The notes below the pieces were generated by a model. The model was not told the origin of the DNA. It was given only the letters and a program-made list of their open reading frames with translations, and did not search any database. From Oikopleura dioica (lineage: Eukaryota; Animalia; Chordata): a DNA stretch of 64,000 bases. Location of the stretch: contig OU015566.1 in assembly GCA_907165135.1 (NCBI GenBank), positions 6,510,001 through 6,574,000 on the forward strand, given 5' to 3'. The position numbers and the translations under genes are program-made. The first letter of the stretch is position 1, and each line of letters starts with the position of its first letter. Of this stretch, positions 1 to 6,958 are shown one piece after another.

Positions 1-15
1 CTTCTTAACCTGCGA

Positions 16-1050
16 ATGCAAGGAGAGATGCAGTTTAACGCATTAAAAGACATGGGAGAATCCATCAATGATCTCAGAAAATATTTTGCAAAGAAGAACA
101 CGATGAGTGACAATGAGGAACTCACTGGGGGAAGTGAGGGAAGTAACCTGCAAAGTCTAGAGGAACGAGCAGATGAGAGTAAGGAAGAGAGGAAAAGATT
201 TGTGAGGACGGAAGTCAAGAAATTTTTCGCGAATCCCGCAAAATTCAATATGATATCGTGGACTGACAACGAGGACATTACGTTTGACGAGCATTTAGCA
301 AGAAACCGGATTGCTATACGAAGCGCTAAAGAATCAGGACTTGCTGACAGCCAATTAATCAACCTATTTCTTCTCACGCTGAGACCAAGAGACCACTACC
401 TGGACGAGGTAGTTGGGGTTAGAGATCGAAAAGACTTCAAGACGTTCATCGAAGGCCTTGGACGATATTTCAATGGATCCTCAACAACGAGCATGAACAA
501 AGTTATCACCGCAAGAAGAAAACCGAATGAGAAACTTATCGAATTTTTCATACGGTTAAGATCAATGTATGGAATGACGGGAAGAGACCCAACAGAAGGG
601 GAGACACCAAACCTCTTTTACACTATCCTGCTGAACAATGCAACGAAAATTCAGAAGACCGAACTGATAAGAGACTTAGATGTTGAAAGAAGGAAAACAC
701 CAATAAAGCTAGACGACCTTAAAGACGCAGTTTTGAAGGCCCAAATGGTGGATGATCAAAGCTACGATGCAAACACTCAACATCTTGTGTATAACATCAA
801 CGATCAGCAAAAACAAAGAGGTTATGAACAACGAAACGAAATGCCAAGATCAAGCTCTAGAAAGCTTATTGACAAATCAAATGTTGTTTGTTACAACTGC
901 GACTCCAAAGGGCACATGTGGCGTGACTGCCAAAAGCCTTTAAAACAACGATTTGTCCGAATAAAAGAAAGAACAAAACAACAACAAGGATATCCGAGAG
1001 AGCCTAGAACCCCTCGAGGGACAGGCTATCGAGCGAACAAAAGCACCTAA
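16..1050 (+). CDS. gag: Gag with CCHC zinc knuckle
   Basis: CYNCDSKGHMWRDC (CX2CX4HX4C) near C-terminus; lies directly upstream of pol. Confidence 0.9.
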   Translation: MQGEMQFNALKDMGESINDLRKYFAKKNTMSDNEELTGGSEGSNLQSLEERADESKEERKRFVRTEVKKFFANPAKFNMISWTDNEDITFDEHLARNRIAIRSAKESGLADSQLINLFLLTLRPRDHYLDEVVGVRDRKDFKTFIEGLGRYFNGSSTTSMNKVITARRKPNEKLIEFFIRLRSMYGMTGRDPTEGETPNLFYTILLNNATKIQKTELIRDLDVERRKTPIKLDDLKDAVLKAQMVDDQSYDANTQHLVYNINDQQKQRGYEQRNEMPRSSSRKLIDKSNVVCYNCDSKGHMWRDCQKPLKQRFVRIKERTKQQQGYPREPRTPRGTGYRANKST

Positions 1051-1075
1051 GCCAGCTGCGAATCGGCTTAGAAAT

Positions 1076-4000
1076 ATGGAAACGAAAACGGAACCGGAAC
1101 CGACTAAGAAAAAACCTTATCAACCACTTATTGTGTACGCCAATGTCAAGGCGAAAGCCCGCAATGGCGTCAAACAAGACGTATTGACTTTACTCGATAC
1201 AGGCGCAACCTACAGTTGCGCAAGCCTTGATTTCGCCGAAAGTCTTGAAAAGAACGGCTCCAAAATCATTAAAGAACAAACTCGCAGAGCCCATCCAATA
1301 GCGGCTAAGGGAGGGACAATGGAAATCGCCTATGACATTATACTGGATGTCACAATCAAAAGCTATCCTGATATTGTCTTCCCTTCAGTTCGCGTCAGTA
1401 TTATACCTGGCCTTCGCGCGGAATTAATACTTGGATGTGACAGTCTCCAGAACCATACACTGCAGATAAATAGCAATTCTGCACTGATTGATGGTAGACC
1501 AGTGCAACTCGCGAGACAGAGGAACACAGTTACACTGAAAGTATTGGAGGCAAATGCTTCAAAGGGCTTCAATACCCTGAAACTTGCTGCCGAAGACCTT
1601 GCAGAAGAGAAGCAGCCCTCTAACCGAGTTTTACTCACCTTAGAATCCAGCTCATCGCCTGGTGTGCCGGACGTGTCTATGATCATGAAGTCAAGTGAGT
1701 TGAAAGCCGATTTCTTGATCACATACCCGGGCCCACCGACCACAGTACCGAAGATTTTCCTGGCCAGAATTGACTCGGTACCGGAAAACTCAGAAACCGA
1801 AACTCCTAGGGGATTGTCGGCTGATGATATCAATGATATTATATCAAAAACAGAGCTAAGCCCACAAGGCCAAGAGAAGCTGAAAGTCATTCTCGAGAAG
1901 CATTCCTGTTCATTCTCGAAGAAGAAGACCGACGTTGGAATATATAAAGGACCTAAAGTTAAACTGCAGTTACTTGACCCAAGACTCCCTGGAGCCTGGG
2001 TCCGACCGAAGAGAATACCCATCAGCCAGCAAGACTGGCTAAGAAAAGAACTTGACGCAATGCAGAAAGCTGGAATCATCGAAAAAGCTAAAGGAAGCCA
2101 ATACAACGCACCACTCCAACTAGTCAAAAAGACGACGGGTGAACATACCGTTTGTGTAGACATGCACTCGCTCAATCTCAGAATAGCTGGAAATGACTGT
2201 CTTCAGGACGAACCGAAAGAGACCTTGGAAAAGCTGGAAGGAGCATCGTTCTTCAGCAAAATTGAGATTCAGCAGCCTTTTCTCCACATGAGCTTATGTG
2301 AGGAAAGCAGACCACTAACAGCATTCAGTGCACTTGACCAACAGTATCAATTCAAACGTATTCCACCAGGATTGAAGATTGCTCCCAATGTCTACCAAAT
2401 GGCATTAAAGGAAACACTTGGAAACGTCATAAGTGATAGCTGTTTTGTTACTCTGAATGAGATCCTTGTGATCGAAAAATCGGAAGAAAAGCATCTTAGT
2501 GCCGTCGAGGAAACGATCGATCGACTTACAACTGCTGGATTCATTCTCGATCCGGAAAAATGCCTCTTCGCACGAAAGAGCATAAGCTTTCTTGGATACA
2601 GAATAACCCCTTCAGGATACTCTCCCGAGCATGACAACCTAGCTCCAATCAGAGATTATCCTGTTCCATCAAACAAGAGAGCTCTTCGTCGATTCATCGA
2701 GATGTGCTCATACTACAGCTCGCTTATTCCAAGACTTAACTTTAAATTGGCGCCTTTATACAAAATCAGTGGAACAAAATCAGTTTATGACTGGGAAGAT
2801 GAACATCAGAATGTGTTTGATGAGATAAAAGCAGCGATTCTACAACAGAATAAACTTGCCTTCCCATCACGTGATCCCGATTCGCAACTTATAGTAACAA
2901 GCGATGCGAGTCTCACGGGATACGGAGGAATGATAAGCCAGAAAATCGGCGACGAGACTGAACGCCCACTTGGATACTGTAGTGGATTTTTCAAAGACTC
3001 ACAACTGAAGTGGCCGATTCACGAGAAAGAAATGTATGCCTTCATCAAAACACTCGAAAATTTTCATCATCATTGCTACGGAAGATCATTTCTTTGGAGA
3101 ACAGACAGTCGATGTCTTGCATTCATCTGCTCGGAAAATAAAACCCGACAGACTAAACGACCATCAGCGAAGAAAGCGCGTTGGCTCCAAAAATTGAGCG
3201 AATACGATTTCGCGATCAAGCACATGGACGGAAAATCACGTGAAATGAGCGTTTGTGATAGCCTTAGCCGACTCGATCCACCTGAAGTTGTCAACCATAT
3301 CGATAATGCAACGGAAACCAAATTCAGAAGTCTTCAGAAGGCGATACCAACCTGGATCAAGCTCAAAGGAATCACAAAAGCCGAGCTACGAGAATGCCAA
3401 GACAAAGATGAATCTCTCCTGAAATTCAAACATGACTGGAAACCATTGAAAGGAAAATATAAGCTCAAACTTGCTGAAGACGGAATCTTCATCTTGGTAG
3501 GGAAAGTTGATCGGATACCAATACCAATGGAGTTACAGAAGAGAATCATCTCAGCTTACCATCTTCCACAACACGCGCGAGTAACGAATATGATCGAAGC
3601 AATGAGGAAATCTGGAATCTTGTTCCCTGGAATGTCAAGAAAGACAAAGGACTACATCAAACTATGCCCAGCTTGTATTACGATGGCAGCGTTGGAGAAA
3701 CCTAAGATTTCACCAGTAGCGGCTCCGAAAGAACAACATCCATACATGACCGTAACTATCGATCTTCTCGGACCCCTGCCATCGACTCCGACACGTAAGA
3801 AATACATATTGGCGGCAATATGCAATCTGACTCGCTGGATAGAGCTCAGGCCCATCGTGGATAAATCAGCACCTCATGTTGCTAAAGCAATAATGGATAT
3901 ATTTTTCCTAAGAGGGCCACCACGGGCAGTTTCTTGCGACAATGGAAAAGAATTCTCCAACAGCATCCTTAAAGAACTACTTACGTCCTTTGGAACCTGC

Positions 4001-4585
4001 ATCAACTATGGAACACCTTATCGGCCGCAAGGACAAGGCCTGATAGAACGAGCAAACCGTGAGATTGTCAAGCATCTCAAAGCGTTAAACATAGAAGAAA
4101 ACCGATGGGACACTTACATCCCATCAATCCAACTGTCAATGAACCTTAGCTACCACTCAGCCTTGGGCTCAAGCCCTTTTCAAGCCATTCATGGCTGGAC
4201 TCTAGCCGAGCCATTTCGTAATAATACTTACAATGGAAAAATCCCCGAAGATGTTCGACTATGGGTTAAAGAGTCGGGAGCTCGAATGTGTGCTGCACTT
4301 TCACAACTTGTTGCGAAGCAAGCAGTAGCATCGACGGAGATACCTGACGATACTGATTCTAATGGGATAGATATTGGAACAGAAGTTCTTTTAAAAACTA
4401 TGATTCCACCAGGAGTAAGTGGAAAACTCTTCACTCCGTGGAAAAGAGGATTTGTCGTACAAAAAAGATGCGACAAATATACGTACATTGTAACCCCGAT
4501 CGAAGCTCCTAGGAGGCGATTTCTTGTGCACCGCGATCGAATACGGATCCTGCACCGGAATCTTAAGAATTCGCCAAAGGTATGA
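1076..4585 (+). CDS. pol: Pol polyprotein (protease, degenerate RT, RNase H, integrase)
   Basis: PR LLDTGA; RT fold FSKIEIQQPF / IPPGLKIAP / VTLNEILV / FLGYRI; RNase H TSDAS, EKEMY, RTDS, CDSLSR; IN HLPQH..CPAC, TIDLLG, SCDNGKEF, IERANREI. Confidence 0.95.
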   Translation: METKTEPEPTKKKPYQPLIVYANVKAKARNGVKQDVLTLLDTGATYSCASLDFAESLEKNGSKIIKEQTRRAHPIAAKGGTMEIAYDIILDVTIKSYPDIVFPSVRVSIIPGLRAELILGCDSLQNHTLQINSNSALIDGRPVQLARQRNTVTLKVLEANASKGFNTLKLAAEDLAEEKQPSNRVLLTLESSSSPGVPDVSMIMKSSELKADFLITYPGPPTTVPKIFLARIDSVPENSETETPRGLSADDINDIISKTELSPQGQEKLKVILEKHSCSFSKKKTDVGIYKGPKVKLQLLDPRLPGAWVRPKRIPISQQDWLRKELDAMQKAGIIEKAKGSQYNAPLQLVKKTTGEHTVCVDMHSLNLRIAGNDCLQDEPKETLEKLEGASFFSKIEIQQPFLHMSLCEESRPLTAFSALDQQYQFKRIPPGLKIAPNVYQMALKETLGNVISDSCFVTLNEILVIEKSEEKHLSAVEETIDRLTTAGFILDPEKCLFARKSISFLGYRITPSGYSPEHDNLAPIRDYPVPSNKRALRRFIEMCSYYSSLIPRLNFKLAPLYKISGTKSVYDWEDEHQNVFDEIKAAILQQNKLAFPSRDPDSQLIVTSDASLTGYGGMISQKIGDETERPLGYCSGFFKDSQLKWPIHEKEMYAFIKTLENFHHHCYGRSFLWRTDSRCLAFICSENKTRQTKRPSAKKARWLQKLSEYDFAIKHMDGKSREMSVCDSLSRLDPPEVVNHIDNATETKFRSLQKAIPTWIKLKGITKAELRECQDKDESLLKFKHDWKPLKGKYKLKLAEDGIFILVGKVDRIPIPMELQKRIISAYHLPQHARVTNMIEAMRKSGILFPGMSRKTKDYIKLCPACITMAALEKPKISPVAAPKEQHPYMTVTIDLLGPLPSTPTRKKYILAAICNLTRWIELRPIVDKSAPHVAKAIMDIFFLRGPPRAVSCDNGKEFSNSILKELLTSFGTCINYGTPYRPQGQGLIERANREIVKHLKALNIEENRWDTYIPSIQLSMNLSYHSALGSSPFQAIHGWTLAEPFRNNTYNGKIPEDVRLWVKESGARMCAALSQLVAKQAVASTEIPDDTDSNGIDIGTEVLLKTMIPPGVSGKLFTPWKRGFVVQKRCDKYTYIVTPIEAPRRRFLVHRDRIRILHRNLKNSPKV

Positions 4586-5010
4586 TGACGCGTCAGAAAA
4601 GTGTATGTTGATGGCTAACGGATATACCTAGGAGCAGACGACACTTCAGGAGAAGAATAACGATAAAGAAGAAATCGTTAAACCGGATGAAAATTCGGTA
4701 GTTAATAGTCAGGCGCCATCAGTAGAAGCAGAAGAGGAAATATCAACATCAGCGGTGCCTAGAAGAAAGACTAGAGGACAGAAAGTGCCGTATGGTAAGT
4801 TTTTCTGAGACATGGAGCTAAGGATAGAAGATCGTCCTCCAAGAAACTTCATGTCAACAACTCACGCAGAAGAGACAGAAAACGTCGATTCGGGAAGAGA
4901 CTTCACTGCGAAATCAAAATTTGTTCACCTCGATAATTCTTTCTGCGAATAAGCCGAGTAAAAGACAAAACACTAACTCTGACTTATTAAGATAACTCGA
5001 GGTCTACGAA

Positions 5011-5478
5011 ATGAAACGAAAACCAAACAAAAACAAAATTTATCATCACCAAAATGATATGCAATTTGATAAGGAATGCACGAAAAATTCACGAATCAAC
5101 GACGAAGAAACAGAAGGAAAATCAAACAACTCGCCAAAGAAGAAAAAAATCAGCTACAACGAAAACGGTCAAGCGCGGTCGACAAACAGGGGAACCGAAT
5201 CACAGATTCAAACAAACCGACTCAGTATTTCATGTTTGATTTGCTTGGATACTGTAAGATCACCTAAAAGACTAAATTGCAACCACGCCTTCTGTGGTGA
5301 ATGCATCGACTACTGGTATTTGATTTCCAGTAAGACTTGCCCCCAGTGTAGGAAAAACATAAGCTGGAGCGAAATTAACGGACCAAAATGGAAAACAAAT
5401 TTGATTAACAAATTCAACGAAGAGAATATAAAAAAAAAACAAAAGTTGACGAAAAGGAAGAAGAACTTCGAAGATTGA
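5011..5478 (+). CDS. C3HC4 RING-finger protein inside the retroelement
   Basis: CLIC-x11-CNH-x2-CGEC-x11-CPQC with a Lys-rich C-terminus; lies between pol and the PPT. Confidence 0.8.
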   Translation: MKRKPNKNKIYHHQNDMQFDKECTKNSRINDEETEGKSNNSPKKKKISYNENGQARSTNRGTESQIQTNRLSISCLICLDTVRSPKRLNCNHAFCGECIDYWYLISSKTCPQCRKNISWSEINGPKWKTNLINKFNEENIKKKQKLTKRKKNFED

Positions 5479-5951
5479 AAAAGTTCTAACCGAAGGGAGG
5501 AGAGAAGAGAAAAGAAGTTGAATCTTCTTTTATTATTCTGGATCACCCGAGTTACAAAAATGTTTTCGATTCTTCTGACAACTCAAACTTTCGTTGATCA
5601 AAAAAGCCTGTTATTCATCATTTCAGAAGCCTTACATAAAAAACATTGTGATTGGATTTAGTCAAGAGTCAATAAGCGACATCTTTTCATCTCTAACAAG
5701 AACTAAATCGACATCTTTCCCGACTAAACATTCACTTTCTTCTTTCGATTGTGGACAAAAGTCAACGTTTTCAGTGTTTCACGGAAAGGATGATTGAATA
5801 AGTCGGAACTCTCGTCTTAAAATCGCGCAAAAATCTTGACCAAGTAATATTGCTGCTAAGAAAATTGACGGAACTTGAGCACAATATCCGCATCACCTGA
5901 TGATGAATCCAGAATCGATGAATCAACATTGGAGCCCAAGTGTTAATTAAT

Positions 5952-5965
5952 GAAGGAGGGAAGAG
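5952..5965 (+). promoter_or_regulatory. Polypurine tract (plus-strand primer)
   Basis: GAAGGAGGGAAGAG immediately 5' of the LTR start TG. Confidence 0.85.
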
Positions 5966-6439
5966 TGTTATAGTATGACTATAACGTATGACTGTTTTAC
6001 TACATAGTATTTCTGCTACTGATCACTGTACGCGCCCAACGCGCGGCGACCTTTCCCTTTTCCCTTTTTGTTATTAATTATTCACTGCACCACCAATAAT
6101 TTCGGCTGCTCCGCCGATATTCTCGCGCGGCGCTCCGATATTCTCGGAAGGGCCGAGAATATCCGCGGACGCTCTCCCGATATTCTTGGGCGCTGCTCTG
6201 ATATTCTCGGATAAGCCGAGAATATCCTCGTAGAAAAGTGACCACTATATAAGGACGACACCCTCCATCAAATCAGTAACGTTCTCAGGGGTCACTTTGA
6301 GCAAGACATACGGCTTTATGCCTAGAGATTACTGTACTGAGACTGTACTAGCGCTGGTCGCAGAATAAATCGGAAACGCTTATTAGCTTTTTATTACAAT
6401 TGTAGTGTGTCTTTATTTCACGCAAGCCATACTACAACA
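5966..6439 (+). repeat. 3' LTR of element 1 (474 bp)
   Basis: Starts TGTTATAGT, ends ACTACAACA (8/9 inverted match); TATATAA at 6246; AATAAA near 6364. Confidence 0.85.
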
Positions 6440-6958
6440 CCCTCAAATAAACGCAAGTCATCGCAATTGTTTACAGGCGTAAACGAAGCTGGCTACTTCG
6501 AATGACCTCTTTTCCCTAGACTCGAGGGCCTCGAAAATATTTAACTTTCGGACACAATTTACAGAATATTTCGGGCGTTCAAATACTTGTCGAAAGTATA
6601 CAGTGTCCATGCTGCATGCGCAGATTGAAGTTCTTATACTAGAATTAAATCTGTCGGGGTTGTAAATTAAAATGTAGCTTCTTTTGAAAGTGGTGACAAT
6701 TGTTTACTGGATATCCGTGAGAGTGCGCTGCTATTCAAATACAGTGCTCTGCTATTTAATCTTGATTATTGTCCCATCGTCTTTAGTAATTCGTTGAAAA
6801 CCTCTTGTGTGAAGTAGAACATTTTGTCTGACACAGGTTTTATTCACCAATCTTCATTCACGCAACCAACAATACAAAATCCAAATCTTTTTTATCAAAA
6901 AAGGGCGTCAAGAAAACTTGCCAAGATTTTGCTTCAAAAGAGAAACTACCGTTTCCTA

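Follow-up and report, generated by a model that had tools for sequence, protein, structure and literature searches.

Non-autonomous long terminal repeat (LTR) retrotransposons such as LARD, TRIM, ETn (moved by MusD) and BARE2 (moved by BARE1) are mobilized in trans by a related autonomous element that shares their primer-binding site (PBS), polypurine tract (PPT) and LTR ends, and they lack coding capacity or lack gag. A degenerate reverse transcriptase (RT) is also carried by domesticated single-copy host genes, for instance RTL1/PEG11, that derive from gypsy elements and have no LTRs. Polymerase-defective and RNase H-defective RTs reportedly complement each other in mixed retroviral particles, as Telesnitsky and Goff are said to have found in 1993. 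We know of no natural RT pairing between two element families that has been demonstrated anywhere. Ty3 RT is an asymmetric homodimer in which only subunit A polymerizes and only subunit B acts as RNase H, and in phenotypic mixing one RT molecule supplies polymerase and another RNase H (PMC5371799). The dimer forms only on substrate. Here we analyse a Ty3/gypsy element in a 64,000-nucleotide stretch of the chordate Oikopleura dioica (assembly GCA_907165135.1, contig OU015566.1, positions 6,510,001 to 6,574,000 of the forward strand; hereafter the window). It probably represents a lineage that is polymerase-dead, dependent on another element in trans and still mobile.

The RT of this element carries the following replacements at catalytic positions:

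2147-2149, forward strand: T358 in place of the dNTP-binding arginine, which every relative keeps (HTVCVD, against YRICVD or FRLCVD), from alignment to relatives and Ty3
2264-2266, forward strand: E397 (codon GAG) in motif A, opposite Ty3 D151, from the 4OL8 alignment
2450-2461, forward strand: T-L-N-E (residues 459-462) in motif C, opposite Ty3 Y-L-D213-D214, from the 4OL8 alignment

They sit in the contexts HTVCVD (2144-2161), FFSKIEIQQPF (2249-2281) and FVTLNEILV (2444-2470); an earlier note made from the letters of the window had placed the motif A and motif C residues at exactly these positions. Ty3 RT (4OL8) is the best solved homologue (E=2.5e-41). In its alignment, E397, N461 and E462 fall opposite D151, D213 and D214, and T358 falls opposite the arginine of FRLCVD, which bears out the altered dNTP-binding finger seen in the same note. 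The note had further listed a change in the PFG motif. IPPGLK is indeed present (2360-2377), but it is weak evidence, its glycine being kept and the middle residue varying in relatives (PMG, LYG, FG). The conserved P-L-P motif is replaced by LQDEP.

We compared these positions across RTs of the same genome and of public databases. In an alignment of the RT-RNase H region, the motif A aspartate and both motif C aspartates are kept in 28 of 28 other in-genome Ty3/gypsy RTs. At columns conserved in at least 90% of that set, the window copy (copy A) and a second full-length copy (copy B) have lost seven conserved residues of the fingers-palm (R, R, P, P, D, D, D) and none at a catalytic RNase H position. 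Database RT segments (246, from 192 proteins) read R-D-D-D in 234 cases, with one deviation in 11, two in one and all four in none; more than two of the four positions are altered in none of the 28 in-genome RTs or the 246 database segments. By these counts, the rarity of the E/TLNE combination is far beyond chance. The predicted RT fold is retained (AlphaFold2 pLDDT 85.5); its best structural matches are subunit A of Ty3 RT (TM-score 0.84) and the RT of cauliflower mosaic virus (0.76).

Could the E...N-E site still support synthesis, perhaps with another metal, and leave the element autonomous? The three aspartate replacements are conservative in chemical terms (D to E, D to N, D to E); Ty3 RT stays active in vitro with D214E or D214N and partly tolerates D213E (PMC5371799), and the element transposes. 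In the same enzyme, however, D151E leaves 2% of activity and D213N none, manganese gives no rescue, and every triad mutation abolishes transposition in vivo while leaving RNase H precision unaffected (PMC5371799). Here the dNTP-binding arginine and the P-L-P motif are lost as well, and the relaxed constraint and sevenfold longer branch described below are the reverse of the pattern expected from a functional active site. We consider an active polymerase highly improbable. The domain probably folds as an RT and cannot polymerize; judged by its sequence and by Ty3 mutagenesis, the element would not possess the DNA polymerase of its own that defines autonomy.

Copies of the family record its mobility. 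The termini of copy A are as follows:

5952-5965, forward strand: PPT GAAGGAGGGAAGAG, near-identical in the sister element S (see below)
5966-6439, forward strand: 3' LTR, 474 bp, TGTTAT...ACAACA, at 100% identity to the 5' LTR, located 3342-2869 nt ahead of the first window position
6440-6443, no strand: 4-bp target-site duplication (TSD) CCCT, the same four bases preceding the 5' LTR

The LTRs of copy A are identical at 474 of 474 positions. Copy B, on another chromosome (contig C2:11194773-11204249), is 9.48 kb long, has LTRs that are 99.6% identical and its own TSD, GGAC, and carries an intact pol of 1171 aa with the same E and TLNE. The identical or nearly identical LTR pairs for which the earlier note proposed to look are present, with distinct TSDs. 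In copy C (contig C1), a derivative of 4.4 kb, gag and almost all of pol are missing and the LTRs are 99.4% identical; contig C3 holds copy D, a 5' fragment that has diverged further. Divergence between the LTRs of different copies is 3.6-8.5%, against 0-0.6% within a copy, so that on sequence grounds the insertions are young and the lineages they come from old and separate. We rejected a segmental duplication as the origin of A and B because their TSDs are distinct and their LTR ends exact.

Three further DNA samples, taken from two studies, yielded contigs of the family as well. One contig from an independent sample covers window positions 1532-2619 and represents a third haplotype. It has 17 listed differences, 10 shared with copy B and 7 unique, and none of them falls in a catalytic codon. 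E and TLNE are thus retained in both full copies and in the third haplotype. The substitutions are multi-base, lie outside homopolymers and occur at two assembly loci and in contigs of independent runs. Sequencing, assembly or homopolymer error was rejected on these grounds, as the earlier note had anticipated for homopolymers; the lone decayed copy that it had named as a refuting outcome was rejected too, since the second full copy and the third haplotype carry the same changes. We found nothing in favour of an artefact or a single decayed copy and give such an explanation practically no credence.

Other contigs and sites extend this survey. A contig of sample X2 joins 1786 to 4493, an internally deleted variant without RT, RNase H and integrase, and contigs of X2/X3 join 4969 to 5271, a variant that lacks the RING region as copy B does. 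Exact matches to the LTR-end-plus-PBS string AACATTGGTGTCAGAAGT outside known copies, at C1:550407, C3:2113365, C3:2274788 and C3:2441225, may be further relatives or solo LTRs. A word-based search, an exhaustive HMMER search and a metagenome scan of public data returned no relative more than 61% identical; the closest public matches, P0001 and P0002, have canonical RTs.

We then asked how the domains of pol have evolved, using the ratio of nonsynonymous to synonymous substitution rates (dN/dS) between copies A and B, calculated per domain by the Nei-Gojobori method:

1076-4585, forward strand: pol open reading frame (ORF), 1169 aa, protease-RT-RNase H-integrase, with Pfam matches to RVT_1, RT_RNaseH, rve, Integrase_H2C2 and aspartic protease; dN/dS 0.15 overall
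1190-1210, forward strand: protease active site LLDTGAT, intact by residue check; protease dN/dS 0.21
1961-2851, forward strand: RT domain (fingers, palm, thumb), fold kept and catalytic residues lost; dN/dS 0.38 in fingers-palm and 0.92 in thumb
2852-3280, forward strand: RNase H domain, four acidic residues kept (D/E/D/D at 2894-2911, 3020-3034, 3095-3112, 3251-3271); dN/dS 0.098, branch length equal to that of relatives
3281-4582, forward strand: integrase, with HHCC zinc finger (3560-3574, 3665-3676) and DDE core (3755-3775, 3932-3955, 4040-4063) intact; dN/dS 0.084

The intact protease DTG, RNase H acidic residues and integrase HHCC and DDE motifs named in the earlier note were each located in pol, and its single open frame is indeed followed by the PPT and the LTR. 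The linker shows no nonsynonymous change, which leaves its dN/dS undefined, and gag gives 0.32 at a dS of 0.32. Over the whole RT we counted 17 nonsynonymous and 9 synonymous changes (dN/dS ~0.5), which sets the domain apart from the remainder of pol (Fisher p = 8e-4); RNase H and integrase together depart from neutrality at p ~1e-22. The expectation of dN/dS below 1 therefore holds comfortably for protease, RNase H and integrase, but the RT, for which it had been framed, is relaxed.

Maximum-likelihood trees built per domain from natural sequences (A, B, sister S, environmental P0001 and P0002, outgroup P0003) place the acceleration in the same domain. The stem leading to A and B measures 0.64 substitutions per site in the RT fingers-palm, about 7 times longer than the 0.03-0.09 of S, P0001 and P0002. 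In the other four regions (protease, linker, RNase H, integrase) it matches its relatives. With the natural sequence L022 as outgroup, a Tajima test gave 23 versus 9 unique changes in fingers-palm and 4 versus 4 in RNase H. Purifying selection acts on protease, RNase H and integrase, and the RT is relaxed. Positive selection for the pseudo-RT is not supported; the RT evolves as a relaxed domain rather than a conserved one, so that an in-frame folded spacer fits equally well.

The conserved protease, RNase H and integrase could also be enlisted for a host-serving restrictor or domesticated gene, a pseudo-RT polyprotein kept to poison the particles of related elements, in which a co-assembling polymerase-dead subunit would be dominant negative. 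A host gene would be expected at a single fixed locus without LTRs or TSDs. The element instead has LTRs, PBS, PPT and TSDs, with young LTR pairs at several non-syntenic sites on several chromosomes, and its RT is relaxed rather than conserved. We regard a restrictor as very doubtful.

A polymerase-dead lineage needs a donor, and its nearest in-genome relative, the sister element S (~60% identical in pol), is a candidate. The RT of S is canonical (YRICVD, FFSCVDIRQAFFHM, PMGLK, AYLDDVLV). S measures 37.4 kb, has LTRs of 307 bp and occurs as two copies on different chromosomes, S1 and S2 (C1:15279698-15317059 and C4:3697268-3734646). Its four LTRs are 100% identical, the two copies are 99.8% alike, and their similarity ends exactly at the LTR ends; gag and pol are intact in S1, and S2 has a frameshift in integrase. 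From its sequence, S looks currently active. With the dead-RT family it shares the PPT AAGGAGGG-T/A-A-A/G-AG, the LTR ends TGTTAT...AACA and a 51-nt TATA/start core (44/51 bases), and in a pattern search the string of LTR end plus PBS, AACA-TT-GGTGTCAGAAGT, is exact at both S 5' LTR ends. The genome thus holds a polymerase-competent relative that reads YLDD and has PBS, PPT and LTR termini in common with the dead-RT family, the kind of helper that the earlier note had proposed to look for. S is the likeliest polymerase donor. A complex prediction pairing the RT-RNase H of copy A with that of S scored 0.01 in a run without controls and is evidence neither way.

S has further features of its own. 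At 37.4 kb it would rank among the largest LTR retroelements known, and beyond gag and pol it contains extra gag-like fragments and several ORFs without a Pfam match. Between the LTRs of S1 lies a connexin-domain ORF of 322 aa (PF00029, E=2.6e-18; L015:7911-8876, forward strand), a host gene that the element may have captured or that a composite element may enclose. Beside the 3' end of S2 is a ~380-nt repeat (L016:2840-3218, reverse strand) with more than 35 copies at 87-98% identity on all large contigs, probably a short non-autonomous element.

We propose the following course for the dead-RT family. It has kept inserting complete, integrase-made copies despite its RT. Because new insertions cannot come from an RT that does not polymerize, their complementary DNA would have to be made by the RT of another element, S being the likeliest donor. 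The family's own protease, RNase H and integrase appear to be still in use, because purifying selection on them is evident. The RT would persist as a relaxed, in-frame, folded module that connects the protease with RNase H and integrase and may retain template binding or a role as a non-polymerizing subunit. In its core, the earlier suggestion of a non-autonomous lineage that keeps everything except polymerase activity is supported by the copies, the dN/dS values, the LTR pairs and the YLDD relative. Its specifics, a pseudo-RT that supplies the RNase H subunit of a heterodimer or restricts related elements as a dominant negative, are not supported. We think it unlikely, if worth stating, that labour is divided more strictly: the dead-RT family would give Gag, protease, integrase and an RNase H subunit, the polymerizing subunit would be obligatorily borrowed from the 37-kb S in mixed particles, and the dead-RT block would spread by recombination as a cheater module.

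Several points weigh against a trans-dependent, mobile lineage. The inactivity of the RT is argued from sequence and published Ty3 mutants, and helper use is deduced solely from the cis signals that the two families have in common. Further families carry the PBS string as well, which makes PBS sharing alone unspecific; the PPT and LTR termini are for that reason the more specific links between A and S. The gag proteins of A and S are only ~37% identical, and their co-assembly is not assured. For the RT, dN/dS is neither significantly lower than 1 (p = 0.08) nor significantly different from that of protease plus linker in the same young block. The family is represented by only two full-length copies and one partial haplotype. 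One oligo-dT RNA run contained zero family reads, in a sample where the organism's presence is not established, so the count is no test of expression. Lastly, A and B are recombinant mosaics: in 300-nt steps over window positions 1-6000, divergence ranges from 0.3% (1459-2058) to 21% (start of gag), and dS, highest in gag (0.32), falls to 0.02-0.05 across linker and RT and stands at 0.16 for RNase H and integrase. Of the segments that A and B share, the dead-RT block has diverged least and is the youngest, so part of the constraint on RNase H and integrase could predate it. Its low divergence may reflect chance, a recombinational sweep or assembler collapse in read data. The mosaicism itself implies recombination among several co-existing family lineages.

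A mosaic whose RT block is youngest also suits a passive passenger, whose own pol proteins go unused, whose RNA is packaged, copied and integrated entirely by helper particles, as in LARD, TRIM or ETn elements, and whose open frames and low dN/dS are inherited from RT-competent ancestors and reached A and B by recombination. Deletion derivatives exist (copy C, without gag and pol, and the joint in X2), and ORF1, which precedes gag, evolves almost neutrally. Against this, two 3.5-kb pol frames remain fully open despite 114 substitutions, with all indels in-frame, and the acceleration is restricted to RT, with protease, RNase H and integrase normal, whereas wholesale disuse would relax all domains. 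The RT carries ~14 excess substitutions over ~350 nonsynonymous sites, a rough figure that would place the loss at about the time of the split in RNase H and integrase. We hold the passenger to be doubtful, with a real but small chance of being right, and favour a lineage that has lost polymerization and still uses the rest of its pol.

The remainder of the element is conventional in layout. Copy A measures 9,782 bp in full, from 3,342 nt before the window start to window position 6439, in the order 5' LTR, ORF1, gag, pol, RING ORF and 3' LTR; the window begins within gag and holds the 6.4 kb at the 3' side. Two further features flank pol:

1-1050, forward strand: 3' two-thirds of gag; the whole gag is ~490 aa and starts ~420 nt upstream of the window
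5011-5478, forward strand: RING-finger ORF, 155 aa, in the usual position of env; kept in copy C, sister S and the environmental relative L048, deleted in copy B

Gag has a CCHC zinc knuckle close to its end (Pfam zf-CCHC, E=6e-5). The pol frame is +1 relative to gag; counted from stop to stop, it is open from 966 onward and overlaps with the last stretch of gag. RVT_1 matches pol at profile positions 55-205 only, and both RT-linked RNase H families are matched. The PBS, TGGTGTCAGAAGT, adjoins the 5' LTR; no tRNA lies within the window, and a pattern search on the matching acceptor stem returned only non-tRNA matches. With its protease-RT-RNase H-integrase order, CCHC gag, TG...CA LTRs, PBS, PPT and short TSD, the element is a Ty3/gypsy (Metaviridae-type) LTR retrotransposon in every structural respect except the RT triad, where E397 and T-L-N-E replace the motif A aspartate and Y-x-D-D.

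ORF1 comprises 483 codons between the 5' LTR and gag (L008:5968-7416, window -2031 to -583). It is weakly constrained (dN/dS 0.55-0.85), open in copies A, B and C, interrupted by stops in copy D and without a Pfam match. The RING stretch after pol is a feature of the clade (sister S, copy C, L048:6091-6228), with a dN/dS of 0.37 between A and C.

The case also bears on annotation, where an intact pol frame of 3.5 kb that matches RVT_1, RNase H and rve in Pfam would as a rule be classed as autonomous. Full-text literature searches found no report of such a polymerase-dead element, and the Tor paper on Oikopleura dioica (PMC4402516) makes no mention of RING, YXDD, non-autonomous or defective. 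The element resembles the Tor elements of this species in being low-copy and recently inserted and in carrying gag, pol and an extra gene after pol (PMC4402516), and differs in having a RING-finger ORF in place of env. The named groups Tor1-4 are told apart by Pol phylogeny and often carry an env gene; no env was found here. From abundant in-genome families the dead-RT clade stands apart, at 25-30% identity in RT-RNase H.

Ty3 RT (4OL8) offers the closest structural parallel, with the same domain order, the same RNase H type and the match to subunit A noted above. Ty3 D151E and D213N likewise lose polymerase and keep RNase H (PMC5371799). Those mutants are laboratory-made and cannot transpose, whereas the present loss is natural and the element is still inserting. 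The complementation systems, too, belong to the laboratory and to one virus; here two natural element families would be involved, in a pairing proposed from sequence. The element offers a test of whether, in nature, two genomes can share out the polymerizing and the RNase H role within one Ty3-type RT dimer, and of how strongly retroelement proteins act in cis.

Domesticated genes such as RTL1/PEG11 share with it a gypsy-type polyprotein without a working RT, but this element is mobile, present at several sites and furnished with LTRs. Its likeness to LARD, TRIM, ETn and BARE2 would lie in helper dependence, and the deletion derivative copy C, alone in having no intact gag or pol, fits that class directly. 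Copies A and B differ from it in keeping complete gag and pol frames. Described trans-mobilized LTR elements have lost coding wholesale or lack gag; here only polymerase catalysis appears to be gone, and the other domains are under selection.

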